A DNA stretch of 64,000 nt, from assembly GCF_016433145.1 (NCBI RefSeq), contig NC_058131.1, forward strand, positions 285,242,513 through 285,306,512, given 5' to 3'. The position numbers were made by a program, and so were the translations under genes. This document shows, in pieces, positions 16,694 through 51,353 of this stretch (within the stretch, counting starts at the first letter, position 1; each line of letters begins with the position of its first letter). The notes beneath the pieces were generated by a model. That model did no database searches and was not told where the DNA came from. It was given only the letters and a program-made list of their open reading frames with translations. The stretch is from Gracilinanus agilis (taxonomy: Eukaryota).

Positions 16694-18298
16694 ACCCATA
16701 GCCTAGTTTTATGTCCTGCCCCAAATGCCAGCCAGGTTGAGTCATAGGTATAGCATCATCCTTGACAACTTGTGGGTTAGAATAATAGCTAACACTTATG
16801 GAGCTCTTTAAAGGTTATAATCAAGTGCTCTTGTTGGTGTTGAGTCATTGCGATGATAATGTCTGACTCTTTTGACCCCATTTGGGGTTTTCTTGGCAAA
16901 GATGCTGGCATGAGGCAGACAGAGTTAAGTGCGACTCACCCAGCTAGTGTCTGAGGCCTGACTCCTGGCCAGCACTCTAACCACTGGACCACTTCAATGC
17001 CTCAGAATGAGGCAAATCACAATCACAATGGACTGGATCAGAATGTTAGGGAGGATGACACCCTGGAGACTATTCAGTCACAGAATCTTCATTTTAGAAA
17101 GAAGGAAAATGGAAGCTCAGAGATGGAGAGCATCAGTTTGTCCCAAACTTACAGAGTGAGTTCAGGGCAGAGGCAGAGTTGGATTCAGGTGTCCTGATCC
17201 CTGGGCCCAGCAAATTCTAGTAAAGGTCTAAGACTATAGTAATTTAGGATAGTGGAAAGAGCCCTGGACTTGTTGAAAGTACAGAGAACTAAAGGTGAAT
17301 CTAGCTGGGTGACCCTGGGTAAATCACCACATTCTCAGAGCCTTAGTTTCCTCATCTACAAATTGGGAATTTTTTTGTTCTACTTCTTTCAAGATGATGG
17401 TGATTAAAGTGCTCTGAATACCTCCAAAGGAAAGCTATAACCTTGGGAGTCATTCTTGGCTCTTCATTTTCCTTCACCTTTCACATGTGTTTACTCAGTT
17501 GCCAAATCTTAAGTCAATCTGACTTCCAAAACTTCTTCAAGTTCCTTTCTCCCTACTCCCAGGGCCTCCTGCTCTAGCTGAGGCCTCATCATTTCTGGCT
17601 AGAGCTATTGCAACAACTTCCTGATTGGCTTCCAAGCTTCTGGTTCCATCCTTAATTGGCCCCAATCCTATTTTTTGCATTTCTTTGTATCTTGAGTGCT
17701 TAGCACAATACCCAGTGACATGCTCAGCAAAATTGTGAAATTTGCATTCCTAAAGTAGGTCTGACCATATGTCATTTCCCTAATCAAAAGGCTCTAGTGG
17801 CTCCCAGTGCCTTTAGGACAAAATGCAACTCTTCAGCCTGGCATTTAAGGCTAAATCTTATTTGATTTTCCTAGTGTTCAAGTACTCTCTGTTCCAAATT
17901 GGCTGGGGCTGAGAGGAAAACTGGAGTCTTGGGGATTGATTACCTTGACCTTTTTTTTTTTTTTTAAACTCTCTTCTGTCTTCTAATCAACACTAAAGAG
18001 AGGTAAGGGCTAGGCAACTGGAGTTAAATGACTTTCCCAGGGTCATGTAGGAAGTATTTGAGGCCATATTTGAAATCAAGACCTCCAGATCTGGCTCTCT
18101 TATCAACTGAGCCACCTAGCTGCCTCCTACCTTGACTATTTGGGTAGGATTCCAGAACAGCAGAGCTTCTAGGCTCCCTGCCCATCCTATCCTTAGGGGG
18201 CTGTGTGCCAATCCCATTCAATCCTGATGGTGGAGCTGAGCTCAGACTGACTGACTTGGGATCCCATCTTACCTGTTGGGGATTGGTTTAGGTTCTAC

Positions 18299-18425
18299 CT
18301 TTAGGAAGAAGTTATAAAGTCGAGCCCGAAGGATGTAGACATCAGGGTTGGGATGCTGCTTTAATTCTTTTGTGATGATCCCAAGGCATTCCTGATGCTT
18401 TTTCATGGCCAAAAGGCAAGCAATA
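18299..18425 (-). CDS. TTC16: TTC16 exon 6
   Basis: catttcag/gtagaa; (S)IACLLAMKKHQECLGIITKELKQHPNPDVYILRARLYNFFLK. Confidence 0.93.
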
Positions 18426-18527
18426 CTGAAATGAGGAGGAGGGAGGATGTGCCAAGGTGAGGGGGACTTCTATCCCAGGCCTAGCACCCTCCCCCACTCC
18501 CTCCAGTCCTTGAGGCTCCAGGGTCAC

Positions 18528-18628
18528 CTGCGAAAGCGGTAGGAGGATTTGAAAGGCTGCAGCTCTGAAGCCTGGGTGAACAGATCTAAGGCTTTCAGGT
18601 ATGATTCCTCTTCAAAGAGACACTGGCC
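18528..18628 (-). CDS. TTC16: TTC16 exon 5
   Basis: ccccaccag/gtgacc; GQCLFEEESYLKALDLFTQASELQPFKSSYRFR. Confidence 0.93.
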
Positions 18629-19092
18629 CTGGTGGGGAGGGAGGCAGGCATCCACAAGTGTCTCTGACCCCTATATAGCCTGTTAAGACAGCTGGGTACA
18701 TTCTAAGAGGTAGGAAGAGGCAAGGGGAGACACAAATTGAAAGGGACAAAAACTTGAATGGGGCGAGACAGAGGAGACCAGGAAGGCTACAGGGACAGAA
18801 ATGAGAAGAGATAGGAAAGGGGAGAAGAAATAGATGCTGGCAGGAAAGAGAGAAAAAGAGACTAGGAGAGAGGTGGGAAGGAGAGAGTAAGAGGCAGAGC
18901 CACCAGGGAGAAGAGAAGACCACCAGAGGGACAAGGACAGGGGGGAGGCAGAGACAGACAGATGGTCAGAGGCAGACTGACAGCCCACCCCAGACTGAAC
19001 CAAGAACCCTCGAGCCCCTACATGGCTTCTGTCCCTCAGGAAGGAGGCAGAACATGTGGTTCCCTATTCCCTGGCTGGACTAAGCAACCCAC

Positions 19093-19236
19093 CTGGACAT
19101 ACAGGACAAAGCAGAGGCGGTCTATTAACTGGGGCCGGTATGGGGCTAACCCGGCAGCCTTTCGAAGGTTCTGGGATGCTGAGGAAAAGTCACACAGCTG
19201 GATATAGGCCTCAGCCCGAAGCACATAAGCTTCCAC
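19093..19236 (-). CDS. TTC16: TTC16 exon 4 (TPR)
   Basis: gccacag/gtgggt; VEAYVLRAEAYIQLCDFSSASQNLRKAAGLAPYRPQLIDRLCFVLYVQ. Confidence 0.95.
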
Positions 19237-19665
19237 CTGTGGCAGAGGTGAAGAAAGACACTGCAGGCAGGCTGGTTTTAACGTGGTCTAGGCAAATTTA
19301 GCCCAACCCACACTGCAAATTAATAGGCTACAGGTGTATTGAATCTCAGATAAAGGGACCTCTGAAATCCTCTAGTCTTAACAAGGACCAAAGGATTTGT
19401 CAGGCAGTTAAACAGAGGCCCAATAAGGTGAAGTGACTTTCAAGTCAAAGTATGGGTGTCCAGTGTAGGAGGTACCAAGGAATCCATGAGCCCAAGGGAG
19501 GTGGCATCAGGAAGGGGGATTACAGTAGCTTGGTAGGAAATTTGCTTGCTCTTTGGGGTTTGGGGAAGGCCCCCAGCCTCCCCCAATTGTTGGCTGGGAG
19601 GGGATGGCAGAGGGGTTGTGGGGGAGGAAAGAATTTTTGCTCTCTCTATTCTCTCCCATTCTCAC

Positions 19666-19756
19666 CAGCTCGGGATTAAGGTTGATGGCTTTGGAGAAGG
19701 AGAGCACAGCCTTCTCCCACTCCCCACTGGACATGGCATCCTGCCCATGTTGAAAG
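19666..19756 (-). CDS. TTC16: TTC16 exon 3 (TPR)
   Basis: gtccacag/gtgaga; FQHGQDAMSSGEWEKAVLSFSKAINLNPEL. Confidence 0.93.
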
Positions 19757-20115
19757 CTGTGGACAGAGGACCAGGCAGACAGTTTGGGGTGAGAGGGGTC
19801 AGAAAAGGATCAAAACTTAGAGGACAGAGGAGGACAGTGTTCCAAAGTCTAATGTGGCAGGGGAGGAGGGTTCTGGGAAGGAAAGGGCTGTAATATGAAG
19901 AAGGGCAACACAGCTTCTAGGAGGAAGTCATAAAATCATGGAATGTGGGCTGAGAAGGACCTTCTGTCAAATAAGATATCATGCCTTTTAACAGACAAGG
20001 AAACAGGTACAGAAAAGCATCTAAGATCACAAGGCAACTGGTAGATCCTGAACTAGAACCTAGGGTTTCATGGAACTGGGAGGAGGACATGGGAGTAGAA
20101 GAGATCCATGCTTAC

Positions 20116-21998: not shown

Positions 21999-22190
21999 GT
22001 GAGTGTGCGGGAGAAGGCGGGGAGCTTTCTGGGCTGGAGGGAGATGGGGTACAAAAGGAAGGGAGGAGGCCGAGGGGCCAGCCCCCCCCCCTCCCAGCAG
22101 CCCCAGTTCTCCCCACCTCCCCTGAAGCCCGTGATTCTGGGGCCCCAGCAGCCAGCGGCCAGGGAATTGGAAGGGACTCCGAAATGTATC

Positions 22191-22224
22191 GTGTGTGTGT
22201 GTATGTGTGTGTGTGTGTGTGTGT
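22191..22224. repeat. (GT)n microsatellite
   Basis: Directly visible, one interruption. Confidence 0.95.
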
Positions 22225-22426
22225 GGGTCTTTGACAATCTGGATTTGAATTTCGGTGCTCCGAGTCCAAATCTAGCATTTTTATCTGTTATACCACCCTG
22301 GGGAGAGGGAGGGCGGAGAGAAGCTTCTTTTGGATCTACATTCGTTAAGTAAAGTGTACGGGAAAAAACGTGCTAAGTGCTAAGGAAGTTAAAAAGTTTA
22401 GGTGAGGCATGATCCTTGCCCTAAAG

Positions 22427-22636
22427 CAGGGGGTTTTATTCTGGGGATGGACTTCAGGGGAACCGTGTGAATTGGATAGGGAAAAAACTACAGCTTTAAT
22501 TTCACTAACCCCTAACTGAAATTTGGCATTTATTTCAATTATGAATTTTTAAAATGTATTATGGGGCTATAAACTTCACCAAAAGGGCCTATGATAGCAA
22601 AAAAAAAAAAAAAAAAAAAAAGGTTAAAGACCTCTT
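22427..22636. mobile_element. Old hAT/Charlie-type MITE
   Basis: CAGGGGGTTTTATT...TTAAAGACCTCT ends; internally similar to 62307-62518; CCTAAAG on both flanks. Confidence 0.55.
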
Positions 22637-23514
22637 TCCTAAAGGAATTTAGAGCAGCCTACTGGGATAGGAAAATAGCCCATATCTCATGTAGTAGGGC
22701 ATACTGTAGCTATTTTATATATACATAAATAGTTATTAAAGAGTAACATAGTACTTTGTGAGGTCCCAGGGATATTATCAGATTTGAAAAGGCTTTTAAG
22801 TTGATAAAGAGTCCCAATAGGTGAATCAAAGGAGGAATGGTATTTCAGGAATTAAGCAAAGACATAGAGAAGTATGAGAGGATGTGGGTCAGAGTGTTTT
22901 TTTTTTTTTAATGAATATGAAAGAGGCCAGAAAAATGAGATGAGACAAGAGAGAGTGATTCCAGGTTTTGAAAGTTCTTGAATACAAGAATTGAATACAA
23001 TTAGTCATTTAAGGGTTTAAATATTACCTGTCATTAGGGAACTACTGAAAATTTTTGAGCAGAAAATTGATCAGAATAAATTTCTAGATGAGAAAGATTA
23101 TTTGGGCCATATTAAATAGGATGGATTAAAAAAATCCCAAAAAAAAATTATTTTAAAAAAAAGCAGAGAGATACTAGAAGCTGCTGTGATAACTCCAGGC
23201 AGATGATGATAAGGGATCTACCTGTATTACAGTGATGCCAATAGGAATAGAGGGAAAAAATTACTTCCAGACAGGTTTTGGAGAGGTTCTCAACAGAGCC
23301 TGTTAATTGAATAATTGTGAGAGGTCAGAATCAAAGAGAAGCCCAAGGATTAGAAACATGGGTTAAATGGCTGGCTGAGTGGTGCTGCCATTGCCATCAA
23401 GTGAAGTTTTTTCAAGTAGGGGGGAAAAGATGGAATGAACTCATTTCTGGAGATGTTGGATTTGAGGTGCCATTGTGGTGCTCAGGTAAAGACAGGATGG
23501 GGGAAGTTAGCTGT

Positions 23515-23539
23515 ACACACACACACACACACACACACA
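23515..23539. repeat. (AC)n microsatellite
   Basis: Directly visible. Confidence 0.95.
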
Positions 23540-24676
23540 TATAAAAAAGCTTGAAAGGAGATACAGATTTGGGAATTATCTGCATAGAGGTAGTAATTGA
23601 AGCTGGCACAGAGAAAATTGTGAAGGAAGTGTAAAGACAGAAGAAAGTCCCCCACCGTGGGGAATGCTTATATTAGGGTCGAAGGAAGAAAATAAGAAAC
23701 TATCTGGGAGGAGTAAGAGGAGGAACAGTTAGAGAGGCTGGAGGAGGCCCCATGAGAGTGTGGAGCTTGAAGTAGGTAATTGGTAAGCATTTGTTAAGCA
23801 TCTGCTGTGTGCCAGGCATTGTGCTAAGTGCCTGGTTCAGAGAAGGCAGAAAACAGCACCTGTCTCAGGGAACTCACAGCCTGGAAAACAAATATGTACA
23901 AACAAGGTATATAACAGTAGTATATATAAGGGGGTTCAGGAGAGGTTTCTCATAGAATTTTAGCTCTGACTTGAAGGAAGCCAGGAAGCTAGATAAGGAG
24001 GAGAGCATTCCAGTCATCAGGAGATAGAATGTCTTGTGGGAGGAACAGCAAGAATGCCAGTGTCACCAGATCACCAGACTACCTTGTGAAGTGTCAGAAA
24101 GGAGTGAAGAGTCAGAAGATGTGGAAAGGTAGGAAGGAACCAGGAGGAACAAGAGTGTGCCAAACAGAGGGTTTTATATTTGATACTGGAGGTGATAGAG
24201 AGAGCCACTAGAGTTTATTGAATAGGGAGGTGGCGGGTTCAGATCTGCTCTTTAAGAAGATTAATTTGACAGCTGAATGGAGGATAGACTGAAGTAGGGA
24301 GACACTTACATCAAAGATGTCAACCAGAAAGTCATTGCAATAGTCCAAGTGAGAAGTGATAAGGAGCTGCATCATGGTGAGAGCAGTGTCAGAGAGAAGG
24401 GGACATAAACATGTTACAAAGATGAAGTCAACAGGATTTGAGGCTCAAGAGCTATGGGGCTAATCATCAGTGTCAGAAGGAATGGGGAGAGGTCTAGGAG
24501 AATGAGTCCTGAAAAGAAAAAACCCAAACCTGTGGATTTGGTGATGAGGTCAATGGTAACCTAGTGAGAACAGTTTCAATTAATAGGTGAAAGGAAGCCC
24601 GGCTGCAAGGGGTTAGAGAGAAGGTGGGTGGGTAGTGAGAAAGCAGAGGGAAGCTCAGTACTTTTTTGACCCACAG

Positions 24677-25558: not shown

Positions 25559-26083
25559 GTAAGTCTTTCCCCTGGAGTAGTGGAGCATTTCCTAGACCTA
25601 ATGCTCTGTACTAGAGTTCGTGTGTCCTATCAGGCCTCCATGCTCTGAAACCTTAGTGCTGAGGTAAGATTTTTGAAGGGACCTGAGAATAGCCTCTAGC
25701 CCAAGCTTACTGTCCTCCTGGGCAAGTATTTAGGCTTTCGTCCCTCCTGTCCCTTTTCCTGATTCACCAGGACTGGCCATATGGGATTCTGGAAGAAAAG
25801 AGAGTAGTAGCCTAGCATTGTAGCATTATGCCCCACTCCTGTTAAGGAGCCACTCTTCTGTTTGCTTCCTCCCCTAAAGCAGTATTCCTTTCATCTCTTC
25901 TATGCTTTGAGGGGCTCCTGTCATAATTTCTCAGTGGCACCTGAGTATAGGCTTCAAGGTAGAGAGTTGGGGGTTGAGCAGGAAGCCATAATCAATACAC
26001 AGAGCCTTCTACCATGGGGCAAGAGGTTGTCTCTTCTGGCTAGGCAGCCACCAGTGTTTCCCACTCACTCTTCCAATTCATAG

Positions 26084-26278
26084 GTCATGCCCCGGCTCCG
26101 AGTAGGCATTGGCCGACCTACTCACCCGGGGGCTGTGGAACGATACGTGTTGGACAGATTCACAGCAGCTGAGCAAGAACGACTGCCTCAGCTGCTGGAG
26201 CAGGCCACAGAACTGCTACTCAGCCACATCCAGCAACGGAGCCTGGCAGGGGCGACGTGTTCAAGCCACCCCTCCTGA
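26084..26278 (+). CDS. PTRH1: PTRH1 exon 5 (terminal coding)
   Basis: ttcatag acceptor; [34 protein letters not shown]...SSHPS-TGA. Confidence 0.95.
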
Positions 26279-26553
26279 CATGACAGGAATAGGCCTCCCA
26301 CCGTGGGCCAGGGCACAACTCATAGATGGCTGTTCCCCCACAATGGAGAGAGGCAGCCTCTTTTTGCCTTACTGAAGAAGCACAAAGGTCAGAGCCTTGG
26401 CATACCAACCCCACTCAGGAAAGCCTTGATCCAGGCTTGGGGCAAAGACATTGAGGAAGATGGTTCTGGGTTCACACCACCCACATTGTGCCCTCCCTGC
26501 CCAACATTAGACCTGCTCATACCTGTGTAATCAATTTTTGATGGGACATTTAA

Positions 26554-27315
26554 TTACTCTTCTGTCCCTGCCGGGGGGAATAAAGATTTGTCTTCCAAGG
26601 ATGAAGCTTGCACTTCCTCCTCAGCTTCCTCTGCCTCTTCTGCTTCCTCTGCCTCTTCTGCTTCCTCTGCCTCCTCCTCTGCCTTGTCTACTTCTTCTGC
26701 CTCCTCCTCTGCCTTGTCTACTTCTTCTGCCTTCTCTGCTTCTTTTGCCTCCTCTGCCTTCTCTACTTCTGCCTCCTCTTCTGCCTTCTCTACTTCTTCT
26801 GCCTCCTCCTCTGCCTCTTCTGCTGTCTCCTCTGCCTCCTCTTCTGTCTCCTCTACATCCTCTGCTGTCTCCTCTGCATCTTCTGCTGTCTCCTCTGTCT
26901 CTTCTGCTGTCTCCTCTGTCTCCTCTGTCTTCTCCTCTGCCTCTTCTGTATCCTCTGTCTTCTCTGCCTCCTCTTCTGTCTCCTCTGTTTTCTCCTCTGC
27001 CTCTTCTGCTGTCTCCTCTGCCTCCTCTCCCTCCTCTGTCTCCTCCTCTGTCTCCTCCTCTGTCTTCTCTGCCTCTTCTGCTGTCTCCTCTGTCTCCTCT
27101 GTCTTCTCCTCTGCAGTCTCCTCTGTCTCCTCCCCTGCCTCCTCTGCTTCTTCCCTTGCCCCCTTTCCCTCTGGCTGCTCTTCTGTGGCCACTTCTGCCA
27201 ATTCTAGTCGTATGGGAGAGGCAGAAAAGATTACTTTCTTCCCCTTACTCTTTTTTCTTGTGGTCAAGGAGATAGCAGGCAGTTTGAACCGACTCAGGGA
27301 GTCTGGAAAGGAAAT
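26554..27315 (-). CDS. CFAP157: CFAP157 copy 1 exon 9 with long acidic Glu/Ala/Thr tail
   Basis: ttctgttttcag acceptor, phase 0; ISFPDSLSRFKLPAISL...(EEA/EET repeats)...PPAGTEE-TAA, 253 aa. Confidence 0.8.
   Translation of the reverse strand: MSFPDSLSRFKLPAISLTTRKKSKGKKVIFSASPIRLELAEVATEEQPEGKGAREEAEEAGEETEETAEEKTEETEETAEEAEKTEEETEEETEEGEEAEETAEEAEEKTEETEEEAEKTEDTEEAEEKTEETEETAEETEETAEDAEETAEDVEETEEEAEETAEEAEEEAEEVEKAEEEAEVEKAEEAKEAEKAEEVDKAEEEAEEVDKAEEEAEEAEEAEEAEEAEEAEEEVQASSLEDKSLFPPAGTEE
26579..26584 (+). terminator. Probable PTRH1 poly(A) signal, lying antisense within the last codons of CFAP157 copy 1
   Basis: First AATAAA seen after the PTRH1 stop. Confidence 0.6.
26614..27153 (-). 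repeat. Degenerate triplet-periodic coding repeat (GAG/GAA/GCA/ACA), polypurine on the - strand
   Basis: ~540 nt of EEA/EET/TAEE/VDKA units; the + strand is almost all C/T. Confidence 0.95.
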
Positions 27316-27429
27316 CTGAAAACAGAAAATTCAGAGAAATTCATCTGAATTATCTTCTATTTTATTCCATCCTTTTCTTCCCCACCCCCTGAAGGCTCCC
27401 ACCCCCAATACTTCAGGGGCAGCGGATAC

Positions 27430-27580
27430 CTTATAGTTTCTGAGACGAGTGGTTTTGGATAGCAATTGGATATCTTTTGGGTTGAAGGGAGTGTGGGATG
27501 GCTGGAACATTGCGCTTATGCTCGACAGCTTGTATGGCATGTTGACGGTCATCCGCTTGTGGGGCTTGAAGCCCTTGCAT
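27430..27580 (-). CDS. CFAP157: CFAP157 copy 1 exon 8
   Basis: ccttttcag/gtatcc; CKGFKPHKRMTVNMPYKLSSISAMFQPSHTPFNPKDIQLLSKTTRLRNYK (cf. human IPPNPQDLRLLSYITR). Confidence 0.85.
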
Positions 27581-27978
27581 CTGAAAAGGCAATAAGTCAG
27601 GCCCATGGAGTCCAGAGAAAAAAGAGACGATGCAGCAGTGACGACCCCTACCCCCACCCACCCTTTTGTGGACAGTGAAGAATCCCTTTCCTGAAGGCTT
27701 CCACTCCATCCCCACGGGATCTCCTTGTTAGGCAGTGTGGTGTAAGAGCTTTAGCACTGGACTTGAAGTCAGGTTACTAACCCGGGACATTTACTAGATG
27801 CGTGACCATGGGCTAGTCACTCAATCTTTTAGGGGCTCAATTTCCTCATCTGTAAAATGGGAGTAATAATAGACCCCCACCACCACCACCACTAAATTTT
27901 GGGAAGAGCACAAAGGCAAACCTCATCGTACTACACCAATGTGAATTATTATTAATAATACTATTAGCCACTGCTCAC

Positions 27979-28154: not shown

Positions 28155-28892
28155 CTAGGGGAAGGCAAGTGGAAGGTGTGTGTAAGGAATCTGCAGTCCA
28201 CAGTGCAAGGTACACACATGCACACACCCCTTCTTTTTTAAGATGAACTTATTGTACATCAACAAACATGAACCATTGTGCTATTTCCAGGAAATGAATG
28301 TAAAATGAGGCTATATGCAAAGTGGGGTCTTGCCTATGTAAGGGCTTGCGTCCATAGCCTGTATGCCCTAGCCCCTGCTCTCTGTGCCTATCTGTAGCAT
28401 AGGAGCTGATGTATTAGAAGCTGCTGCGTTAGTGCTTTGCCAAAAACAAAAAAGCACCTCCTTTTTATTACAATGAACTCATTGCACATCCTTACAAACA
28501 TGGACATTTCCCAATAGGGAGAACAGAAAAAGAGGACTGCATGGGACACCACAGATCTCCAATATGAAAAAAAATTTACAGATTTAACATGCTCCAACCT
28601 TGCCCTAATTGCCCAAAGTTCCCTTCTGAATTTCCTTCCACTCTTGAATTTTTTTTAGATGTTCCATTGATACTCTTTTCTTTTTAGGGGGCAGAAAAGC
28701 GTATCATTACTAAAGGCCTCTCTAAATAAAAGCCTTCCCTCTGCAAGCTATCTTGTTCTGCACCTATAGTCTACTGACCATGAACCCAATTAAAATGTAA
28801 CTAGGAAACATTTAATAAAATAAAAATATAGCACAATATAGATAATGCTAATTTGTGGTTTTCTAGGTCACTATGTGGCCAGCAGTGTTCTA

Positions 28893-29095
28893 TTTTTTTT
28901 TTAAACGCTTATCTTCCATCTTAGAATCAGTACTATACATTGATCCCAAGGCAGAAGAACAGTAAGGGCTAGGCAATGGGGGTTAAGTGACTTGTCCAGG
29001 GTCACTCAACTAGGAATTATCTGAGATTACATTTGAATCCAGAACCTCCTGTCTCTAGGCCTGGCTCTCAATCCACTGAGCCAGCCAGCTGCCCC
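28893..29095 (-). mobile_element. SINE1_Mdo-like SINE
   Basis: Reverse-oriented full-length copy; another follows at ~29190-29405. Confidence 0.75.
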
Positions 29096-29476
29096 TGAGG
29101 GATCTATTTCTATTTGAATTTGATATCATTCCTAGTTTATCACCTCTCTGCCCATACACAGAAAACAGGAGTTTATCAATTGTTCTCTCTCTTTTTCTTT
29201 TCTTCTTTTTTTTAACCCTTGCCTTCTATCTTAGAATCAATACTGTGTGTGGGCTCCAAGGCAAAAGAGCAGTAAGGGCTAGGCAGTGGGGGGTTAAGTG
29301 ACTTGCCCAGGATCACATGGCTAGGAAGTATCTGAGGTCAGATTTGAATGCAGAACCTTTCTTCTTCAGTCCTGGCTTTCTATCCACTGAGCCACTCAGC
29401 TGTTCTCAGTAGAAGAACACCTGTTGGGGCCATCAGCCTATGGCCAGGGTCACTGTCCCTTGCAGGGAAGCCTCAC

Positions 29477-29627: not shown

Positions 29628-30221
29628 CTGAGGAGAGGCAGACAGGGAATCATGGGGTTCCCCCAAATCTAGAAGTAAAGAAGGGAGGACTAGGGCAGGA
29701 CTGTCTTGTCTTAGAATTGCTTATTCACCTCTAAGAACCAGACAGGCCTTTTCTTTATAAAATCTCTTATTTAAGAGAAGAACCTCAAGAAGCCATTTGG
29801 TCCCAGCTATTATCTCCATTTTATAGATACAGCTTTCTGGCTTCTGTCTCTGATTTAAATTTATTAAATATGTATTAGACAAGGGCAGCTAAGTGGCTCA
29901 GTGGATTGAGAGTCAGGCCTAGAGACGGGAGGTCCTAGGTTCAAATCTGGCCTCAGATACTTCCTAGCTGTGTTACCCTGTGCAAGTCAATTGACTCCAA
30001 TAGCCCAGCCCTTACTGCTCTTATGTTTTGGAGCCAATGCACAGTTTAATCCTAAAATGGAAACAAAGGATTTCAAAGTGAACAGCTTTCCATGGTAAAT
30101 TGAAGAATCATTGCTTGATCAGTACTTGGATGGGCAGAGCTGGGACTATGGCTTCATACCCTAATGTGCCTGTCTGGTTTGACTTTTCAGTTGGCCATGC
30201 CTCTTCTCAGCGATAGCCTAC

Positions 30222-32196: not shown

Positions 32197-35100
32197 CTGT
32201 CCAGAGGAGTCCTAGTGAGTCAGCAGGCCCCCCAACACCCCTAAAGGACTTCAAATAGGCCTGAGGGTGGCATGAGAGAGGTTTGTGAAGAGTTCTTCCC
32301 TTAGCCACATGTTCCTAAGGCAATTTGTTTTTTCACTTCACTTCTTGAACCACTCCCCTCAAGCTCTTTTGCGACAGGTATCTTATGGGTCCAAGCTTAT
32401 TTCCCACAGCTCTACTGTTTGCATCCTCTCTGTTGCAGGGTCATCATCCTCGTTCTTAATAACTTACATTTGTGGTGCACTTCAAGGGTTACAAAGTGCT
32501 TTGCCCACAAGGATCTTGTAGCATAGATCTTTTTTTTAAAAAACCTTCCCTTCTGAATTAGGATCAATACTGTGTGTTGGTTGGAAGGCAGAAGAGCGGT
32601 AAAGGCTAGGCAATGGAGGTTAAGTGGCTTGTCCACGGTCACATTGTGGGAAAACATCTTTGTCTGATTTGAACCCAGGACCTCCTTTCTCTAAGCCTGT
32701 CTCTCCGTCCACCAAGCCTCCTAGTTGCCCTATTGTATGTCATTTAAGTAATATCATCCCAATTTTGTCAGTAAGGAAATTAACAGATCAAGAATTCAAG
32801 TGAGTTATCCATGGACACAGCTAGTGTCAGACAATATTTAAAGTTGGGTATACTGAGTTCACATCCAAGGCGATTTCCTCTAATATGGCTGCCTGTCCAT
32901 GCTGTTCCTCACAAGATACCTTTGCTCATGCTGAGCCCTCCTCCTGGATCATTCTCCTTCCTTCCATTTATTTCAATTTTACTCATTTTTTTTAAAGACC
33001 CGCCTTTTCAAATCCTACCTCTTCCTACCCTGTTTGTTTCATTCAACACTGATGTCTCCCTTGTAAGAAATCAGAGAACATTTGTGGAAGCAAAATGATG
33101 TGTGGAAGCACAAAGTAAAGATGATTATTTTACAAACAGACCATAACTGAGCTGTCCAAATGAGTGAAATCCTGCCCCACCCCCTTCAAAATGATCCCTT
33201 TGGGAGCCTGGCATTGATTCCAAAGATTCTGTCATTGCTCAAGGCCATTTTAGGAGCTTCTCTTTGGGAATAACCTTCACATCCTCTGTCCCCTTCTCTT
33301 TAAATAACCTCAATGAAGGCATCTCTTCATCCTTTCAACAAATAAATCAATTAGCATTGGTTAAGTCCCCTCTACATTCAAGATGAGTGGCACCCCAGCA
33401 TGGAGGATAGAGGGCCAGCCATGGAGCTCTGAGCTCAAGTCCTGTCTCTGACTCCATGCTAGGTGTGTGACAGTGAGTAGGTCAGTGTTCCCAGGCAGCT
33501 CTCTAACATTGAAAAGTTACAATTAAGTTGTAGGCAGAGGGAGTTTCCATACAAGGAGTTCATTCAGTGCCAGTGCCATCTTCTACATGAAGTCTTTTTC
33601 CATCTCAGCTATTCATATCCTCCCAAAACTATCATGTGGTTCTTTTGTATGTATTCTGTATTATATATGTACATGCCAGCTCCCCCATTAGAATGGAAGC
33701 TCCTTGAAGGCCTAGACTATCTATTTTCTGTCTTTATAGGGAAATTATAACTAAATTAGGTGAACACAGAATAGTATACCTGTCAGATCTATGGGAAGGG
33801 AAGGAATTTAAGACCAAGCAAGAGAAAGAGAACATTACAAAATGTAAAATGAGTGATTTTGATTATATTAAATTAAAAAGGGTTTGTACAAACAAAACCA
33901 ATGCAACTAAAATGAGAATAAAAGCAACAAACTGGGATAACAAAATTCTCTGACAAAGGTTTAATTTCCCAAAAATATATTTTATGTCTTTATATCTCCA
34001 GTGCCTGGCACGAATTAAGTATTTAATATCTCCAGTGCCTGGCACGAAGTAGGTATTTAATGTTTCTTTTTTTCATTTTAAATTTCATTTTTTATTTTTT
34101 CCCATGGTTACATGATTCATGTTGTCTCCCTCTCCTCTTCCCTCCCTATTCCCAGAGTTGACAAGCAATTCCACTGGGCTATATATATATTATCGCTCAA
34201 AATCTGTTTCCATATTATTCTAATAAATGTTTCTTGATAGATTGTCCCCTTGCTAGGTCTGTCTCCTCCACTTCAAGAAAGAAGTAATGACAAGAAAAAA
34301 GGCATGAATCTTGGGAACTAGAAAGCAAAAATTAAAGTCATCATGGTTCCTGGCCTCAAAGAACCAGCTGCCTGATAGAGCAAGTTACACAAAGACAAAA
34401 TGAAGTTGATAAGGACAGGAGAGATAGACAAATTACCATGGGAAATTTTGAAGAGAGTTCACCTCTGTCTAATAATAACTGATGATTTCTTAGCACTTTA
34501 CACACATTATTTCATTTGAGATTCACACCAAATCCTGTGGAGAAGGAACTAATCCATTAGACCCATTTCAGAGTCGAGGAAGCTGAGGCTCAGAGAGACT
34601 AAGTGGTTTTCCTAAAGTTACATGACTAGTAAGTGTCAGAGGTAGGATTTGAACCTAGGTCTTCCTGACTCCAAATTCCACCACTCTATTCACTCTTTCT
34701 TTATAAATTACTCTTCACCTGACACCAAGTTTGTTTTGTTTTGTTTTTTACTGAAATGACCACGTCTGTAGCTAGAAGAATAAAAGAATACCATATTCTG
34801 CTTCTACTTTCTTGATTCTTTAGCAGAAGGGGAACACAACAAGCTTCCTTGGATGATAGGTTTGATTTTTGGAATCACCCACAAGTCATTCCTAGCCAAG
34901 TCTGATGATGAGTGTGGGCGACTGGGCTGGATCACAAATGGGGTGCGACTCAAATCATTAAAGCTTATTTTCTGACTCATAAAGTGACTCTTGATGGCAG
35001 TTCCCAAACAGGATTCCAGAAATGTTTTGAGCAAAGGCTGCCTCTTTGGAAGATCTATAGGTCTGATCATACAGTCCTTAATTGAAAGGCCTTCAGTGAC

Positions 35101-35402
35101 TACCCACTGCCTAATAAATCTGTCATCTGACTGAATTCAAAGCCTAACATCCTCCCTTTCTAGTCCTAATTCATACTCCCTCCCTTCATAGAGCTTACAA
35201 CTCTAGCCCAAGTGGACAGTTGTTGGCCTCTGGACATGTCCTACATTTCTATCTTCATTCATCTTTCTCCCTCTACTTAGTATAGCTTCACCCAACCCCA
35301 TTTTCACCTTGTTGACATCTTAACCTCTTTTCAAAGTTCTGTCAGATGCCACTTCAGTGAAACTACCTCACCCTTCCCAGATGGAAGTGCCTTTTCTTTC
35401 AT

Positions 35403-35615
35403 TTGTTGTTGTTTTTTTTTTTAACTCTTACTTTCCATCTTAGAATAAATACTAGGTATTGGTTCCAAGGTAGAAGAGTGGTAAGGGCTAGGCAATGGGG
35501 GTTAAGTGACTTGCCCAGGATCACATGGCTAGGAAGTATCTGAGGTCAGATTTTAACCTGGTACCTCCTGGCTCTAGGCCTGGCTCTCAATCCACTGAGC
35601 CACCCAGCTGCCCCC
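35403..35615 (-). mobile_element. SINE1_Mdo-like SINE
   Basis: Reverse-oriented full-length copy; further copies near 40190, 44760, 45725, 48830, 53735, 54400 and 61880. Confidence 0.75.
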
Positions 35616-35860
35616 TTTCATCTGCTTTTAGAGTTCCGCATTTGTCTTAACAACTCTGCTAGCTCTGGGAAGGAAAGAAGGTATTCTCTTGGACATCTGG
35701 GTTCTGGTCAGATTGTTAAATAATCAGTCTCATTTTCTTCTAGGCACCTTGCCTAGTCAACACAGTACGACTCCATCATATCTCCCCCACAGACTATAAG
35801 CTCACCAAAGGTAGGCACTGACACTATCTCTTCTTCCTGTGTCCTCCAGAGTGTAGCCTA

Positions 35861-36265: not shown

Positions 36266-37349
36266 CTAGCTAAGAAAAGGCCTGGGAGTCTGAGACATTG
36301 AGCAAAAAATCTAAGGGCTGGAACCACCACTATTGTTTCCTCCTTTCTGGAGAAAACTGCAAAATAGCTCCCTCTGAGTCCTGCTTTAGGGCCATTCAAA
36401 ATCTCTGATGATTAATTACAAAACAGATACCATCAGTGGGTGGGAGTGCTTCAGGTACCTTTTTTAGAATCCAATTTGGAAAGAATTGAGCTAGATTGGA
36501 TTATATGGTGGTATTTGAAGACAACACCAAGGAGTCTATCCTTTCCCAGAATATCTGGCCTTTAAATGATGCTCAAGAGTCCCATTTAGCTCTTTGGGTT
36601 AAGCATTTTCTCTTTCTCCCCATCCCTTGGAAAATGCAGATCCCTCACTGGAGGGCTAACACAACAAGCCCCATTCCTTCCATGTGAATGAGCTTTGCAG
36701 AAAGCTGGGCTCACTCAGTCAGCCGAGGAAGAGGAGTTAGAGGTGCTGAGGGGGCAGGAGAGGGCCCAGAAAGAGGAGTGAGTAACTCTGGAAGTCAGAC
36801 TGCCAGTTTCCCACTATAGTCCAGAGCCGTCCCAAGGGTCAAGCACAGTGACTGTGCAGCCCCTGGACTCCAGCTTCCTGGTACTCAGATCTGGTTTGTT
36901 CTTCGGGTTCCATCTATTCCAGCCCCTTCAATTTTTTTTTTTTTATACCCTTACCTTCTGTCCTAATATCAGTTCTAAGACAGAAAAATAGCAATGGCTG
37001 GATAGTCAAAGTTAAGTGACTTGCCCAGGGTCGTACAACTAAGAAGTGTCAAAAAGCAGATTTGAACCCAGGTCCGCTGGACTCCAGGCCTGGCACTCTA
37101 TCCACTGTGCCCCCTACCTGCTTCTGACTTCTCATTTTTACAGATGGGGAAGCTGATGCCCAGAGAGGGGGAAGGACTTGCTCAAGGTCACACAGTTAAC
37201 TGGAGGCCCCTGGAAGGGACCTGTAGGGGCCAGAGGCCCTGCTCCCAGCGGCCTAGCCCCTCTTGTCCCCACCCCCTACCCCACCCCATCGCCCCAAACA
37301 TGGTGGGGAACCCTGGCTAGCTGTGGTCTGGGCCTCTCGGCTCACTGAC

Positions 37350-37498
37350 AGAAGGATCCGCTTCTCCAGGTCTTCAATCTGGATTTGATAAAACTTGCGG
37401 ATCTCCTCCGTGATGACCTCTTCTGCAGGATTAGGCGATGGTTCCCCCTTCTTGCCTTTCTTTTTCCCCCCTTCCGCACTTTCTTTTTTGGGCCCCAT
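37350..37498 (-). CDS. CFAP157: CFAP157 copy 1 exon 1
   Basis: gccATGG start in CpG-rich DNA; MGPKKESAEGGKKKGKK...RKFYQIQIEDLEKRIL; gtcagt donor gives the required phase 2. Confidence 0.9.
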
Positions 37499-37544
37499 GG
37501 CAGCGAGGGCAGCTGAGGCTTGGGCGGCTGCGGCGGTGGCCACT

Positions 37545-37650
37545 GGCCCTTTAAAAGGCCAAGCCGTTGCTAAGGAAGCTGTTCCTTCTCCCCACCGGAG
37601 TCCGGTACATAGCAACGGATGGACGCAGGGAGGGAGATGGACTTAAAGGA
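37545..37650 (-). promoter_or_regulatory. CFAP157 copy 1 proximal promoter with two RFX X-box-like motifs
   Basis: GTTGCTAAGGAAG (37566-37578) and GTACATAGCAAC (37606-37617), both conserved in the copy 2 promoter. Confidence 0.65.
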
Positions 37651-40600
37651 GCCCTGCCCTGCCCGGCACAGATCAGCGCCCAGCCCACCATGTTTGCCCT
37701 CCTGACCTCACAGGAGTGCGATGAAACGACTCAGAGAACCTTAAAGTGCTCTATACATTTCCTTTTCCATTTTTCATTTAAAAACTGTTTTTTAGCTCAG
37801 AAGGGCGATTTCGTTCCTGTAAGGGAACTCCCCTCAATGAAATTTACCAGCGCAGGTCTGCAGGACTCACCCAGGTCCACGGGGCCAGTGTGTGTCAGGG
37901 GGAGAATTTGAACCCGCTTCTTCCTGTGTCTCCACCCCCTGGGCCACAGCTTCTTCTCACATGAGTGGGAATTATTTTTGTGACTCCAATCAGAACCCCT
38001 TCCCCCATAGAGGTGGTAGAGAACCACAGGACATGCATATTTAGGGGTCTAGAATGGGCACAGACATACAGGAAGAGCCCCCCCAAGTTTCTCTGGTCTA
38101 GTGGCCTAGTAGGGGCCTTCTGCACCGGATTCTTGGGAGTACCCAGGAATGAGACAGAAGACGACCACAGGTCTCCATGCACGGGATCGATGGGCTCCCC
38201 CTTCCAGTGCAGGGTAGGGGAAAGCCAAATAGAACCTGAGATCTCTCGGTGGAAGAAAAGAGATCTGAGGGAGAGCCGAAGTGCACAGGAGCAGGCTGGA
38301 GCCCACTGGTGGGGCTGTGGGCAGGGCAGGTCAAAGAGCAGGATTGGTCAATGAGAGCTAATGGCATCCAGGCTAGGACTTCCTTCTCTCTGCTCCTTCC
38401 CCAGGAAACTCTACTGAGAAGCTCCTGGACAACAATTCCCATCCCCTTCTGATGAGTGGGGAAGAAGGAGTGCAAGAGGAAATGTAGAGAAATTGCAGCT
38501 TGCTGGGTGCTGTTTTATGCTTTCAGGAGTGTTTTATATTACTAACAAATGACACAACCATTCATTTCCAACTCTTTGTGACCTCATCTGAGGGTTTTCT
38601 CAGGAAAGATTCTGGAACGGTTTGCCATTTCCTTCTCCAGTTCATTTGACAAATAAGGAAAGGAAGACAAACAGGTTTAGGTGACTTGCCCAGGGTCACG
38701 CAGCTCGTATCTGAGGATATCTTTGAACTAAGAAAGTTGGGTCTTCCTGTCTTCAGTTCAGCCCTCTGTGCACTGTACCACCTCACTGCCTTACACAGAC
38801 CTTTAAGGACTCTAACAAACATTACACATATTATCTCATTCGAGCCTCTCCACAGATCTGTAATGGGTACTACCAATGCAGTTGCCCCATTTTACAGTTG
38901 AGAAGGCCCCTGTCACTGCTCACCTGACTATTGACAATAGTCTCCTAATTGATTTCCCTGAGTTTACATTCTCCCCAATCCAGGTTCCATAAATCCAGGC
39001 GCAAGGCTGGGTTCAAATCTGGCGTCAGACACTTTCTCTCTGTGTGACCCTGGGCAAGTCACTTAACCCCCATTGCCTAGCCCTTCCTGTTCTTCTGCCT
39101 TAGAACCAATACACAGTATTGATTCTAAGATGGAAGGTAAGGGTTTAAAAAATTGGATGGAATGCAAATTTCTCTACAGGGTATTTAAAATCCTTCACAG
39201 CCTGGATCCAGAACTTTCTAGACTGAGCTAGACATTTTCTATCATGTTGTGGCTAAACTGGTCTCCTGTTCTTCCTTGTGCAAGACAGTCCATCTCTCAC
39301 CCACAGGCTGTTGCCCAGGCTGTGCTCCATGCCTGGAATGGCATCCCTGATCACCTCTGCCCTTTGGAATCTTTAGCTCCTTTCTGGTTCAGCTCAGGTA
39401 CCATCTTCTGTAGTGGGCCTTTCCTGATCCTCCTGTGATTAGTGTAAGCCTGCTCAACCACCCCCAAAATCCTTCCTTTCAGAAATTACTTTGTATTTGC
39501 TCATTTGTATACATGTTTTCTGCCTCTCTCACCCCCAGTAAATTGTAAGATCCTTGAAGAAATAGTAATAACTATTTGGTTGTTTCGGTTGTGTCCCAAC
39601 TCTTCATGATCCCTTTTCTGAGGGTGGAGGGAGGGATTCTTGGCAAAGATACTAGACTGGTTTACCATTTCCTTCACCAGCTCATTTAAAGATGAAGAAA
39701 CTGAGGAAAACAGGGTTAGGTGATTTGCTTAGGGTCAAACAGCCAGTATCTGAGTTTGGATTTGAACTCAGGTCTTCTTGACTCCAGGCCCTGTGTTCTA
39801 TCCACTGTGCCACCTTGCTGCCCCAAATAATAGTAATATCTAGCATTAATATTGTGCTTTACAAATACCTCATTTGATCCTCACAACCACCCTGGGAGGA
39901 AAGTGCTATTATTATCCCCATTTTACAAATGAGGAAACAAAGTGAGACAGGTTAATTGATTTTCCCAGGATCACTGTGCAAGGAAGTATCTGAGGCAAGA
40001 TTTGAACCCAGGTGCTCCTGATTCTAGGCCTGGCTCTATCTGCTGTGCTACCTAGCTGCCCCCTGGCAACTGAATATTAAATGGTAGCATAGGGTTGTAG
40101 ACCTAGAGTTAGAAGGGTCCTCAGTGGTCATCTAGTTTACCCCCTCCCTCATTTTTATTTATTTCATTTACTCGTTCATTCATTTATTCATTTGTTTGTT
40201 TGCTTATTTATTTATTTTAAACCTTTATCTTCCTTCTTAGGATCAATATTGTGTATTGGTTCCAAGGTAGAAGAGTGGTAAGGGCTAGGTGATGGGGGTT
40301 ACACAGCTAGGAAGTATCTGAGGCCACATTTGAACCCAGGATCTCCCATCTCTGGGCCTGGCTCTCAATCCACTGAGCTATCCAGCTGCCCCCCTCCCTC
40401 ATTTTTTAGATGAGGAAACTGAAGCTCAAAGAGGTAATATAACTTGCCCAAGATCACACAGGTAAGTAGTAGAGTAAAATTTGAACCCAGGTCCTTGAAC
40501 TCTAAATTCAGTGACCTTTCCACTGCATCACACAGCAGGATTCCAGGGAATAATTAAGCACACCAGGGTTATACAGATGGAAGAGTCAGCTCACTTCAGG

Positions 40601-42160
40601 AAGATTCAGTTATTGTAGTCCCTGAAATTCTACCACAGTTCGTGAATGCCAAATGGACATGATGTGGCCCAGGCTAGGGAGAGAGGAGGGATTGGGGAAG
40701 AGGAGCTGCCTTCATTGTGTTCCCCGGCCCCCAGGGAAAGGTCACTGACAAAGAGGCACAGAGGGCAGTATTTTCAGTATAGGAAATGGGGTGTGGAAGC
40801 AACAGGGCAAGGTTCATCCCGAGTTCTCTATCTTTATTTCCCTCCCTTTTCCCCAACCCTTCTTTCTCTCTGAGAAGATCAGATGTATGAGCTAGTACCA
40901 AGGACTTCCATCCAGTATGGTGCCTCATAAGATGGACAAACAACTCCATGACAGAAACTGAAGCTGTGACACGTTAGATAAAGGATTCCAGACCCCTCCA
41001 CCCAGGTCCCCGCTCCCCACTGGGGGAGGCAGCACCCCTATTTGATTTCCACCTTTGTGCCCTAAGTGACTGGCCTCTGGCCCTCCCCCACCTCTGGGCC
41101 TCATTTTCCCTACCTGTAAAATAATTGCTAACCACCTCTCCACCTTCCTCATGGTGATCTGGGGAGAAGTTACCATCAGGAGTACAGTTTCCTGGCAGCA
41201 CCATCCATTGGAATGGACACTCCTTGAGAGGAGGTCTTGGTGCTTGGATCCCCAGCACTTCACCCAGTATTTGGCACATAGGAGGCACTTATGCTTGTTG
41301 ACTGACTGATTGGTGGGGCAGTGCCAGAGAAGGAATTGAGGTGGTTAAGCAGGCAGTGAGCTCTGATTTCTGGCCCTTGCTTGTTCTTTCTGGGTCTGCT
41401 TTGAAAAGAATCACAGCAGAGTCATGGTCCTTGATCAGCTGATTCAGCTCAGATGTCCCTTTTCCTTTGTTCCCCAGAAGCAATGTGGTATTGTTTGTCC
41501 TGATATTTTTAGCGGATGCACCTTTGCCCGATGGGTACACAGTCTTGGAGTGAGGCTTCTGAAGGGGCTGAAAGCAGGGGCCTCTTTTCTAGGCCAGACC
41601 TCTTTCATGGGGAGGTGGTCTACAAAGGGGCCCTACTCCTTGCTTTGATTGGTTCCGGTTGGCACTGCCCAACACTAAGAAGCACTAAGTGTCCGTTTCC
41701 CCACTCTTCGATGGAAGATCCCCCCTAACTCTCTCTACCCCGCTGGAGCTCCCTGAAAAGTCCCTTCCATCCCTTTGGCTTGAGGTTAGTAGGAGTGGGA
41801 AGAGATGACAAGGTCTGCCTCATCAGCTTCCCAGAAAAGACCCATCTGGGATGACTCGGCACAGGGGCGACTCATGAAACAGTCTTTGGCCCCAGAGGAA
41901 CAGCCTTGGAAGGGCTGAGACCAGGGCTTCTAGCCTAAGGGGCTTAGTGCTCAAGGGCAGGGGAGGGGAGGGAAGGGGTCCAGTCGCTATCATGGCTTTT
42001 CTTCCATTCCTGGTATAACCATTTTATACATTTACTTTCTCTCCCACCCTTGCCTAGGAAATAAGACTACCAATGTCTACAGCATTTCTTCTTTATACAT
42101 TTTTTAATTTCATTTACCCCTTTGCAAGAACTGAGGGCCAGGGAATAGTAAAGGGGGAAC

Positions 42161-42250
42161 CTATTCCTGCTTTTCCACCGAACTGGAATGCAGGTGGAAA
42201 GATGGCAGGCTGGCCTGCCTGGTCCCTTTAAACATCCGAGGGCTTGGAAT
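42161..42250 (-). CDS. CFAP157: CFAP157 copy 2 exon 9 (terminal)
   Basis: tttttcctttccag acceptor; IPSPRMFKGTRQASLPSFHLHSSSVEKQE-TAG; ATTAAA on the - strand at 42108-42103. Confidence 0.8.
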   Translation of the reverse strand: MPSPRMFKGTRQASLPSFHLHSSSVEKQE

Positions 42251-42389
42251 CTGGAAAGGAAAAATTCAGAGAATGGGAGAGGCCTGACCTCCATCCTCTT
42301 GCCTCCTGCTCCTTCACCCCATCCCTTCCACCTATCAAAGATCCTCCTTTTACATCCTTGCCCTCATCCTCCCTCCCTTGTTTCCTCAC

Positions 42390-42558
42390 CTCAGGGTTGC
42401 TGAAAGCCTTAACAGGCCTACGGCTTTTGAATGGCTCAGATTCTTGGCTATCCTCTGGGGCTGAGGGTGGACGGGGCACCAGGCCCAGGTCTCCAAGCTT
42501 GTACGGTTGTATGTCGGTCAATTGCTGGAGCAAAGTGGTGGGCTCACTTGGCTGAGGA
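42390..42558 (-). CDS. CFAP157: CFAP157 copy 2 exon 8
   Basis: ttcttcttag/gtgagg; [31 protein letters not shown]...AFSNPE (human [21 protein letters not shown]). Confidence 0.93.
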
Positions 42559-42706
42559 CTAAGAAGAAAGAGAGTCAGGGTTGAGGGGACTCCAAAAAGA
42601 AATACCTCCTCTTTTCCCTAATTTTGCACACTTCAAAACCCAACCCAAATCCTTCCTCTTTTGAAGCCTTCCTTGATGAAGACTCTCAGGGCAGGTCACT
42701 ACTCAC

Positions 42707-42894
42707 CTGTCCTCTAAAGATGTCAAGAAAGACTGGACCGAGGGGGACCTGGGCGGGGGAGTTACAAACTCTGGCATATTGGGCTTCACAATCACAACCT
42801 CAGTGAGTATATCCAATAGCTGCCGCAGCATCTCCTTCCTCCCTAGGTGGAAAAACAGGTCTACCTCGCCAGGCCCAGTTTTATCAGGGCGTAT
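42707..42894 (-). CDS. CFAP157: CFAP157 copy 2 exon 7
   Basis: ccctacag/gtgagt; IRPDKTGPGEVDLFFHLGRKEMLRQLLDILTEVV...LTSLED. Confidence 0.9.
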
Positions 42895-42973
42895 CTGTAG
42901 GGATCAGGAGAGAGGCAGTGTGTGGAGAGAGGTCAGCCCTGTGAGCTCTCCCCAAATCTCCCATATCCCCCAC

Positions 42974-43087
42974 CTGCCTACATCTGCACAGGTCTTGATG
43001 AGTATTACAGCAGTCAAACTCGGCAACTATCTCAGCATGGATTAGCATCGCCCTGTCCTTTATGGATAAGGGCTCTCCCCTCATGAT
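42974..43087 (-). CDS. Candidate extra in-frame cassette exon in CFAP157 copy 2 intron 6
   Basis: cttccatag acceptor, CAG|gtgggg donor, 114 nt, phase 0-0, no stop; 79-nt G-rich intron to exon 7. Confidence 0.35.
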
Positions 43088-43550
43088 CTATGGAAGCTGA
43101 GGCCAGGAAATGGAACATGATTTGCTTTGTCACACTGATTGAGCCACTCAATGTCTCTGGGGCTGAGTTTCTTCATCTGTAAAATGGGGAGGTTGAACTA
43201 GATAATCCCTAAGGCTTCTTCCAACCTAGCATTCTATGGTTCTAGATATGAGCTGTCTTATCCAGAGTCATACAAGGAGTTAATGGCAGAAATGAAAGCA
43301 GAATCTGGGTCTCCTCAAGCTTCAGTTTCCTTACCTATAAAATGGGGATGATAACACCTAGCCTTACCTTCCTCATTATAGTGAGAGTTAAATGAGGTAA
43401 AGGGATGTGGGAGCACTTTGCCAATTGTAGTGCTGGGAGTAGCTATGATGGTATACTGAGTTTAAAGGGTGGGCACACCTAGTATTCTTCGGGTCCTCCA
43501 CCTGTCACTCAGTATCCCATTTCTGGCTCACTAACCTATATAGCCCATGG

Positions 43551-44069
43551 CAGTGATGGTGAACCTTTTAGAAATGAAGCACTGTCCACACCCCACCACA
43601 CACCCCCAGACCAGTGCCATGCCTGCCTCACCCAGACCGAGTGCCTTGTCCCCCCTACCATATACTGGGTACACCCTGCCCCCTTTACCCCACAGGGAAG
43701 GGAGGAAGTGCTCCCATTGGGCTCCTGAAAGGAGAGAGGGTGAAGTAAGGAATGTCCTCAGCAAGTATAGAGAGAGGGAGGGGAGTGGCCCGAGCACTCT
43801 GCTCCCCTCCAGCTATTCTGCCTGTCAGCTGCACACCTTACCTCCATGTGCTCCCATTAGCTGCTGGGCAGAGGGGTGGGGCATGTGAAAAAATATTGTC
43901 AGGCTTGGTGGAGAGGGGGAGGGGAGTAGCTCTGCCCAAGTCCCTCTGCCTTTCTAATAAGGAACTGGGGGTGGGGTGGGGTGGAGGGAAGGAGGGAGGA
44001 TGACTTGAGTGCCCACAGAGAGCTCTGTATGCCATCTTTGGCACCCCTGCCATAGGTTTGCCATCACTG
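43551..44069. mobile_element. hAT-superfamily non-autonomous DNA transposon (MITE) in CFAP157 copy 2 intron 6
   Basis: 16-bp TIRs CAGTGATGGTGAACCT / AGGTTTGCCATCACTG; 8-bp TSD GCCCATGG / GCCTATGG. Confidence 0.85.

Positions 44070-50822: not shown

Positions 50823-51353
<531 letters not shown>

Follow-up and report, generated by a model that had tools for sequence, protein, structure and literature searches.

An in-frame acidic repeat expansion in the predicted last exon of a didelphid CFAP157 paralogue

The 3' end of a CFAP157 gene was analysed in a 64-kb stretch of Gracilinanus agilis DNA (the whole of this stretch is called the window, and positions are those of the window). Two CFAP157 paralogues are present, namely copy 1, which adjoins PTRH1, and copy 2 (CFAP157-like). 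Judged from the sequence, the stretch 27315-26554 on the minus strand is predicted to be the last coding exon of copy 1. The exon holds a long acidic tract, which is an in-frame expansion of the didelphid lineage, common at least partly to Monodelphis. We consider it probable, with some reserve, that a short acidic seed expanded in frame in didelphids and became, most likely, a nearly neutral low-complexity extension of the disordered C-terminus.

The last exon of copy 1 and its acidic repeat

The terminal exon of copy 1 was translated as 253 codons and a TAA (27315..26554, minus strand), and it is preceded by a good acceptor, in which a pyrimidine tract is followed by CAG at 27316. The non-repetitive start of the exon (27157..27315; 53 codons, ISFPDSLSRFKLPAISL..., with a Lys-rich patch) aligned with the copy-1 orthologues and showed 78% identity to the Monodelphis protein P0253 in the identical frame. 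The acidic triplet-phased repeat (26614..27156) comes next and is followed by 19 conserved C-terminal codons (VQASSLEDKSLFPPAGTEE; 26557..26613), which keep the frame of the repeat and matched the QASSLEDKPLFPGQGQESN of other marsupials in the alignment. The TAA at 26556-26554 overlaps an ATTAAA polyadenylation (poly(A)) signal at 26554-26549, so that both lie within 26549..26556. As judged from the protein ends, other marsupials stop within a few codons of this TAA. Moreover, the splice frame NYK-ISFPDSL / NFK-VSFPNSF was common to the CFAP157 models of nine other marsupial species.

The last exon of copy 2 (42250-42164, minus strand) has 29 codons before a TAG at 42163-42161, and it matched C-termini of the P0159 and P0012 type. 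The first-pass annotation had set 253 amino acids (aa) in copy 1 against 29 aa in copy 2, and the translations bore this out. However, the proper yardstick for the gain of a tail is not copy 2 but the copy 1 orthologues of other marsupials.

The last exon opens with 13 nt (27303-27315; ATTTCCTTTCCAG) that form a second acceptor-like site, whose use would change the frame and give Thr-Pro-stop. In every marsupial copy 1 model, the same bases code for Ser-Phe-Pro. The internal TTTCCTTTCCAG, which lies 13 nt into the exon, was considered as the ancestral acceptor and rejected, since the acceptor of copy 2 aligned with the upstream one at 27316 and since its usage gives the premature stop just mentioned.

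The repeat core (27156-26614) comprises 543 nt, 88% of which are purines on the coding strand. Its 181 codons specify 103 Glu (57%), 33 Ala, 21 Thr and 11 Lys, with 5 Asp, 5 Val, 2 Gly and 1 Arg as minor residues, and result in a net charge of approximately -96 and an isoelectric point of 4.05. Along the minus strand, units containing Thr (27156-~26821) give way to units containing Val, Lys and Asp (~26820-26677) and finally to (EEA)n (~26676-26614). The earlier description of a ~540-nt triplet-periodic purine repeat in three zones is in keeping with this arrangement. Tandem Repeats Finder reported periods of 18, 21, 30, 42, and 63 nt, all multiples of 3, for units alike at ~70% matches. A purine occupied codon position 1 in 181/181 codons, 54 of the 56 C residues were at codon position 2, and the period-3 power of the tract was 45, compared to 0.63 +/- 0.48 in shuffles. 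The repeat periods and the unbroken codon phase confirm that length changed in multiples of 3, as had been proposed. The tract was the largest tandem array within the window.

Codon choice in the tract was strongly biased: Ala was encoded by GCA in 32 of 33 cases, Thr by ACA in 20 of 21, and Val by GTA in all five. The four-fold degenerate sites were therefore ~95% A, a pattern of amplified or homogenised repeats and not of long synonymous drift.

The coding strand of the tract contains only 10 T in 543 nt. On the plus strand no stop codon was found in any of the three frames; on the minus strand, one of the two non-coding frames carried one stop, close to its end, and the other carried five. 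When the tract was shuffled by mononucleotides, 12% of the shuffles were still open in the given frame. Slippage changes the length by whole units, each a multiple of 3 nt, and so preserves the frame in the absence of selection; since T is nearly absent, no stop codon arises, and an open frame across the tract thus needs no selection. The frame does stay open over the 253 codons, as the first-pass annotation had stated, but its weight as evidence is small because so T-poor a tract is open in other frames too.

It had also been suggested that the purine tract could form H-DNA or R-loops. The longest pure purine run was 17 nt, the tract consisted of 65 purine runs broken by 66 pyrimidines, and mirror arms did not exceed 15 nt, C included. 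The potential for H-DNA is thus modest and unlikely to be strong. R-loops could be favoured by the G-rich coding strand (240 G, 56 C). A Rfam scan of 26000-27800 returned nothing.

Origin of the tract among marsupials

In copy 1 of Dromiciops, Trichosurus, Notamacropus, Sminthopsis, Sarcophilus, Antechinus, and Macrotis, the last exon encodes 57-61 aa with a layout of approximately VSFPNSF-RFTLPAI-LKKRQL...EKETEEEE-QASSLEDKPLFPGQGQESN. The tract was absent from the orthologues of Dromiciops and seven Australian marsupials, which have EKETEEEE-like seeds at the site instead. Such an acidic seed is 8-9 residues long and holds the codon types that were amplified (Glu, Lys, and Thr). In alignment A1, the 181-codon tract was inserted exactly between ...ET-EEE and QASSLEDK, with both flanks aligned. 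An independent check of spacing agrees with the insertion: the distance from the end of the CFAP157 coding sequence (CDS) to the end of the PTRH1 CDS is 1052 nt in Gracilinanus vs 548 nt in Petaurus, a difference of ~500 nt. The tract was also lacking in copy 2 and in the eutherian protein inspected (P0006). When words from the non-repetitive start of this exon were searched, no match fell in the 139-443-aa range. That the copy 1 lineage truly gained a tail is upheld by these comparisons, the orthologues having only the seed between conserved and in-frame flanks. By this alignment, the Glu frame is the one in which the ancestral exon was read on either side of the tract.

The marsupial copy 1 orthologues (Dromiciops P0199, Notamacropus P0239, Sminthopsis P0243) thus resemble Gracilinanus in gene, synteny, and last-intron splice frame, in the peptides at both ends of the last exon, and in a near-identical stop point. 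They differ in having a seed of 8-9 residues instead of 181 codons and hence a last exon of 57-61 aa instead of 253 aa. Compared with generic triplet or minisatellite expansions in the disordered tails of coding sequences, the tract is alike in its 3n units, homogeneous codons, lineage-specific length, and terminal site. There is no essential difference, except that its size and charge stand at the high end. The kind of event, coding-repeat expansion, is already known; the gene is new for it.

The CFAP157 of Monodelphis is 90% identical over the protein body and, as in Gracilinanus, has a long purine repeat in the homologous exon. Three models (P0253, P0280, and P0281; 655, 638, and 691 aa) splice into this exon and carry the long repeat. 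The first ~12 codons of the tract and the post-tract sequence matched the Monodelphis models when both species were read in one genomic frame. Since, read in this way, the start and end of the tract are near-identical in both genera, the expansion would, at least in part, predate the Gracilinanus/Monodelphis split. In tblastn, residues 521-575 of P0253 lay in the Glu frame of Gracilinanus, and residues 573-655 were one base out of phase, through to the post-tract sequence. The models based on the MonDom5 assembly are thus unlike Gracilinanus in that they enter the repeat with a shift of one base. The three disagree among themselves and, by their accessions, appear to derive from an older assembly. 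In a newer Monodelphis assembly, the place of copy 1 is taken by a gene with a 764-aa product, the longest that NCBI lists there for copy 1, which implies a last exon of ~240-280 aa, depending on the N-terminus used. This 764-aa product was absent from both word searches, though within the length range. The distance from the end of the copy 2 CDS to the start of the copy 1 CDS is ~8.9 kb in Monodelphis vs ~4.7 kb in Gracilinanus (37498-42161).

The assignment of the gene itself came from protein matches. Seven exons of copy 1, from 37498 down to 27334, were matched at 99-100% by P0259 (NCBI CFAP157, G. agilis, 516 aa), and an eighth exon near 29653-29474 was found solely through a tblastx match to copy 2, to which P0159 (CFAP157-like) maps. 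P0259 showed 44-49% identity to eutherian CFAP157, 66-70% to the copy 1 of other marsupials, and 90% to that of Monodelphis. The gene order STXBP1 - copy 2 - copy 1 - PTRH1 was common to Gracilinanus and Monodelphis. In a maximum-likelihood tree of 30 CFAP157 proteins, including marsupial copies, eutherians, platypus, and turtles, the copy 1 clade (100/100) and the copy 2 clade (100/100) were sisters (94/85), apart from the eutherians, platypus, and turtles, and Gracilinanus copy 1 was sister to Monodelphis. This sister relation of the two clades places the CFAP157 duplication as marsupial-specific and older than crown marsupials. The possibility that copy 1 is a decaying pseudogene was rejected, as its 516-aa CDS is open, the seven mapped exons match at 99-100%, and the identity to Monodelphis is high. 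Pfam over the copy-1 exons other than the last gave only sub-threshold coiled-coil matches, and a PDB sequence search with exon 2 gave nothing meaningful. CFAP157 is described as a flagellum/motile-cilium gene, linked to sperm flagellum formation and to CEP350, in what PMC11914644 relays of Weidemann 2016.

Convergent 3' ends and other features of the window

PTRH1 lies convergent to copy 1 and directly downstream of it, with its last coding exon ending at 26278. Its AATAAA (26579..26584, plus strand) is antisense within the Ser-Leu-Phe codons of the copy 1 C-terminus, and the convergent 3' ends of the two genes overlap over 26549-26610. The Leu-Phe pair was kept in all marsupial copy 1 proteins seen, and a dual constraint from coding and from the PTRH1 signal is possible. 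That the tract is part of PTRH1 was considered and rejected, since PTRH1 ends at 26278 and the AATAAA precedes the tract.

A non-coding block of ~290 nt in intron 1 (36616-36903 vs 51668-51942) was 82% identical between the paralogues, which exceeds any coding exon (67-76% at the DNA level). A regulatory element under conservation, or a repeat common to both copies, could account for it; a simple regular-expression search found no RFX X-box or FOX core motif in the block. A perfect 50-nt tandem duplication (51909-52009; 2.0 copies, 100% matches) lies beside the block of copy 2. Repeats of ~200 nt resembling short interspersed nuclear elements, 70-88% alike, are scattered in the introns of both copies (28890-29400, 29865-30077, 32530-32730, 35402-35633, 36937-37121, and many sites in 39000-55000) and dominate the self-comparison. 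Strong purine skew of the plus strand was seen at 18000-20000 (GC 0.18, AT 0.16) and at 22000-24000 (GC 0.29, AT 0.14). A TG/CA dinucleotide run, translated HTHTHT, occurs near 22200, and the low-complexity tracts there are near TTC16/PTRH1.

Splicing, translation and significance of the tail

The penultimate coding exon (27430..27582, minus strand) ends in ...RLRNYK; residues 434-516 of P0259 matched 27582-27334 at 100% in tblastn. The last intron (27316..27429, minus strand) is 114 nt long, or 96 nt with an alternative donor, and contains an in-frame TGA at 27333-27331. Its donors, at 27429 (AAG-GTATCC) and alternatively at 27411 (GAA-GTATTG), are both weak, scoring 4.05 and 0.82 bits with an approximate position weight matrix, compared to 10.15 bits for the equivalent donor of copy 2 and 7-10 bits for most other scored copy-1 donors. 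The acceptor context, by comparison, is homologous in copy 1 and copy 2. The spliced frame is used in most other marsupial models and in all Monodelphis models; retention of the last intron is also predicted in Petaurus, in wallaby isoform X1, and in an older Sarcophilus model. Four runs of one 2021 study contained 38-83% of the words sampled from 26400-27700, and three of these runs are small enough to be transcriptomes. Translation of the tail is plausible, and we think it rather likely that the testis makes a spliced mRNA that encodes the tail.

The following course of events is proposed. In the marsupial ancestor, the last exon would have encoded ~58 residues, and a short acidic seed (Glu-Lys-Glu-Thr-Glu4) would have stood just ahead of the conserved C-terminal peptide. 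In the didelphid lineage, the GAG, GAA, ACA, and GCA codons of the seed would have been amplified to ~180 codons, presumably by replication slippage or unequal exchange. Units of 3n would preserve the frame, and the near T-less strand would yield no stop. If the short, weak-donor last intron is spliced out, a CFAP157 of ~737 aa would be produced (484 residues to ...NYK plus 253, by arithmetic and not from a joined model), with a polyanionic, largely unstructured C-terminal tail. If it is retained, translation would stop at 27331 and the repeat would fall in the 3' untranslated region.

We take the tail to be a polyanionic, largely disordered extension. Pfam found no family match in the last exon. 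AlphaFold, run on the single sequence, predicted helices at 51-119 and 123-239 with a predicted local distance difference test (pLDDT) score of 60-89, disordered flanks, and a mean pLDDT of 68.5; these helices are long and generic, and the model is not decisive. A single alpha-helix of the ER/K type was rejected because acidic and basic residues in the tract are not balanced (108 vs 12). The first-pass annotation had drawn an analogy to RPGR-ORF15, which has Glu-Gly repeats over ~400 aa and, at its C-terminus, a basic domain of ~100 aa with an aromatic helix as the docking site of the TTLL5 CID (PMC13052805). The two are alike in a purine-rich, triplet-phased terminal exon, in a long Glu-rich tract, in being cilium-associated proteins, and in being hard to sequence (PMC13052805). 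However, the Gracilinanus tail is made of Glu, Ala, Thr, and Lys, with 2 Gly in 181 residues, and it is without a basic domain with an aromatic helix (FW...L); the 19 residues after the tract include one Phe but no Trp, and their net charge is negative or nil. In addition, RPGR-ORF15 is conserved across vertebrates, whereas a tract of the Gracilinanus type is confined to didelphids. The analogy therefore failed in the Glu-Gly repeats and in the docking domain, and the likeness is compositional only. A specific role in glutamylation or as a tubulin mimic is unsupported; that other glutamylases might modify a Glu-rich tract near axonemes is speculation.

Three other explanations were weighed. 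The dominant transcript may retain the 114-nt intron, so that a 516-aa protein ends at the TGA and the repeat is a purine-rich 3' untranslated region, a reading that we find doubtful, though the most serious of the three. The sole NCBI product of the species is such a model, both donors are weak compared with that of copy 2, and retention is predicted in three other marsupials. Nonsense-mediated decay spares transcripts whose stop lies in the last exon, and it would not remove this one, whose stop is so placed. However, no testis RNA went into the retained-intron model, and a tissue in which a gene is hardly expressed often yields unspliced reads. The spliced frame that most marsupial models and all Monodelphis models use, the acceptor conserved in both paralogues, and the C-terminal peptide that is still in frame after 181 repeat codons also speak against retention. 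It is unlikely that the tract is real but that its length, its internal order, and perhaps its frame continuity are artefacts of a 100-bp linked-read assembly. The 2x100-bp reads and a contig N50 of 57 kb are in line with such an artefact, even the run richest in the words sampled from 26400-27700, probably the whole-genome run of the project, contains only 0.83 of them, and the Monodelphis products for the homologous exon differ in length by assembly (638-691 vs 764 aa). Against it, the window is without N, the units differ enough (~70% matches) to give many unique 31-mers, a collapse or expansion of 3n units alters length and not frame, and both flanks of the tract are anchored independently by orthologues. 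More improbable still is that the tail is a selected module, either a polyglutamylation substrate or a mimic of the tubulin C-terminal tail at the basal body or axoneme. Its extreme composition, the link of CFAP157 to sperm flagellum formation and CEP350 in the passages relayed from Weidemann 2016 (PMC11914644), a long tail open reading frame in Monodelphis too (764 aa), and 543 nt with no frame-breaking indel would suit this. The RPGR-type features are lacking, the tail is missing from eight other marsupial orthologues, copy 2, and eutherian P0006, the codon usage resembles recent DNA amplification, and the frames given to the repeat by older Monodelphis models are basic. The bolder form of the idea, in which a translated tail of ~180 residues and a charge of ~ -96 has been open since before the Gracilinanus/Monodelphis split and acts at the basal body or axoneme of sperm as a polyglutamylation substrate, a tubulin-tail-like decoy, or an electrostatic spacer, seems equally improbable. 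In a sharper variant, a one-base change may have switched the Monodelphis tail to polybasic Arg/Gly without truncation, the repeat being open in several frames.

The preferred explanation, in-frame expansion into a translated and nearly neutral tail, has several observations against it. The only annotated Gracilinanus product (P0259) retains the last intron and ends ...DNSDEFL at 27334, before the tail. Transcripts lacking the tail, which the first-pass annotation had named as a threat to its proposal, are in this sense represented by the only model of the species, but the model is not decisive, because the RNA-seq of G. agilis came from kidney, muscle, and liver only, with no testis (PMC8390783). 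In the MonDom5-based Monodelphis models, the sequence after ...EEEPEAE reads Arg/Gly, and two of them then read Arg/Gln; if these frame shifts are genuine, not even the didelphids share a conserved acidic product. Frame-breaking indels in orthologues, a second such threat, are thus seen in models that depart from the Glu frame where the repeat begins, but the evidence is assembly-dependent only and not decisive. An in-frame match to both flanks has a chance expectation of one in three, an open frame alone says very little about coding or function in a tract so poor in T, and the conservation of the C-terminus could come partly from the antisense PTRH1 poly(A) signal and not from coding constraint. 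The tract contains zero frame-breaking indels in 543 nt, and if it predates the Gracilinanus/Monodelphis split, this unbroken frame could hint at selection, against pure neutrality. Finally, the exact unit count and length of a 0.5-kb imperfect repeat are not secure, because the reference is a stLFR/Supernova assembly of 2x100-bp linked reads (contig N50 57 kb; PMC8390783). We nevertheless hold that the tail is most likely a tolerated extension and not a dedicated functional module.

For annotation, the current Gracilinanus CFAP157 model (516 aa) should be flagged, as this retained-intron model probably misses a conserved last exon. The tract is a clean case of a purine-rich coding seed that grew ~20-fold while the frame never closed, and the lesson is that an open frame in such purine-rich sequence does not testify to function. 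Should the tail be translated, a protein required for the mouse sperm flagellum would bear a tail that ranks among the most acidic known, and would do so in a single marsupial family. It would then be a candidate non-tubulin substrate of glutamylases and a natural experiment on the charge tolerance of a basal-body/axoneme protein.

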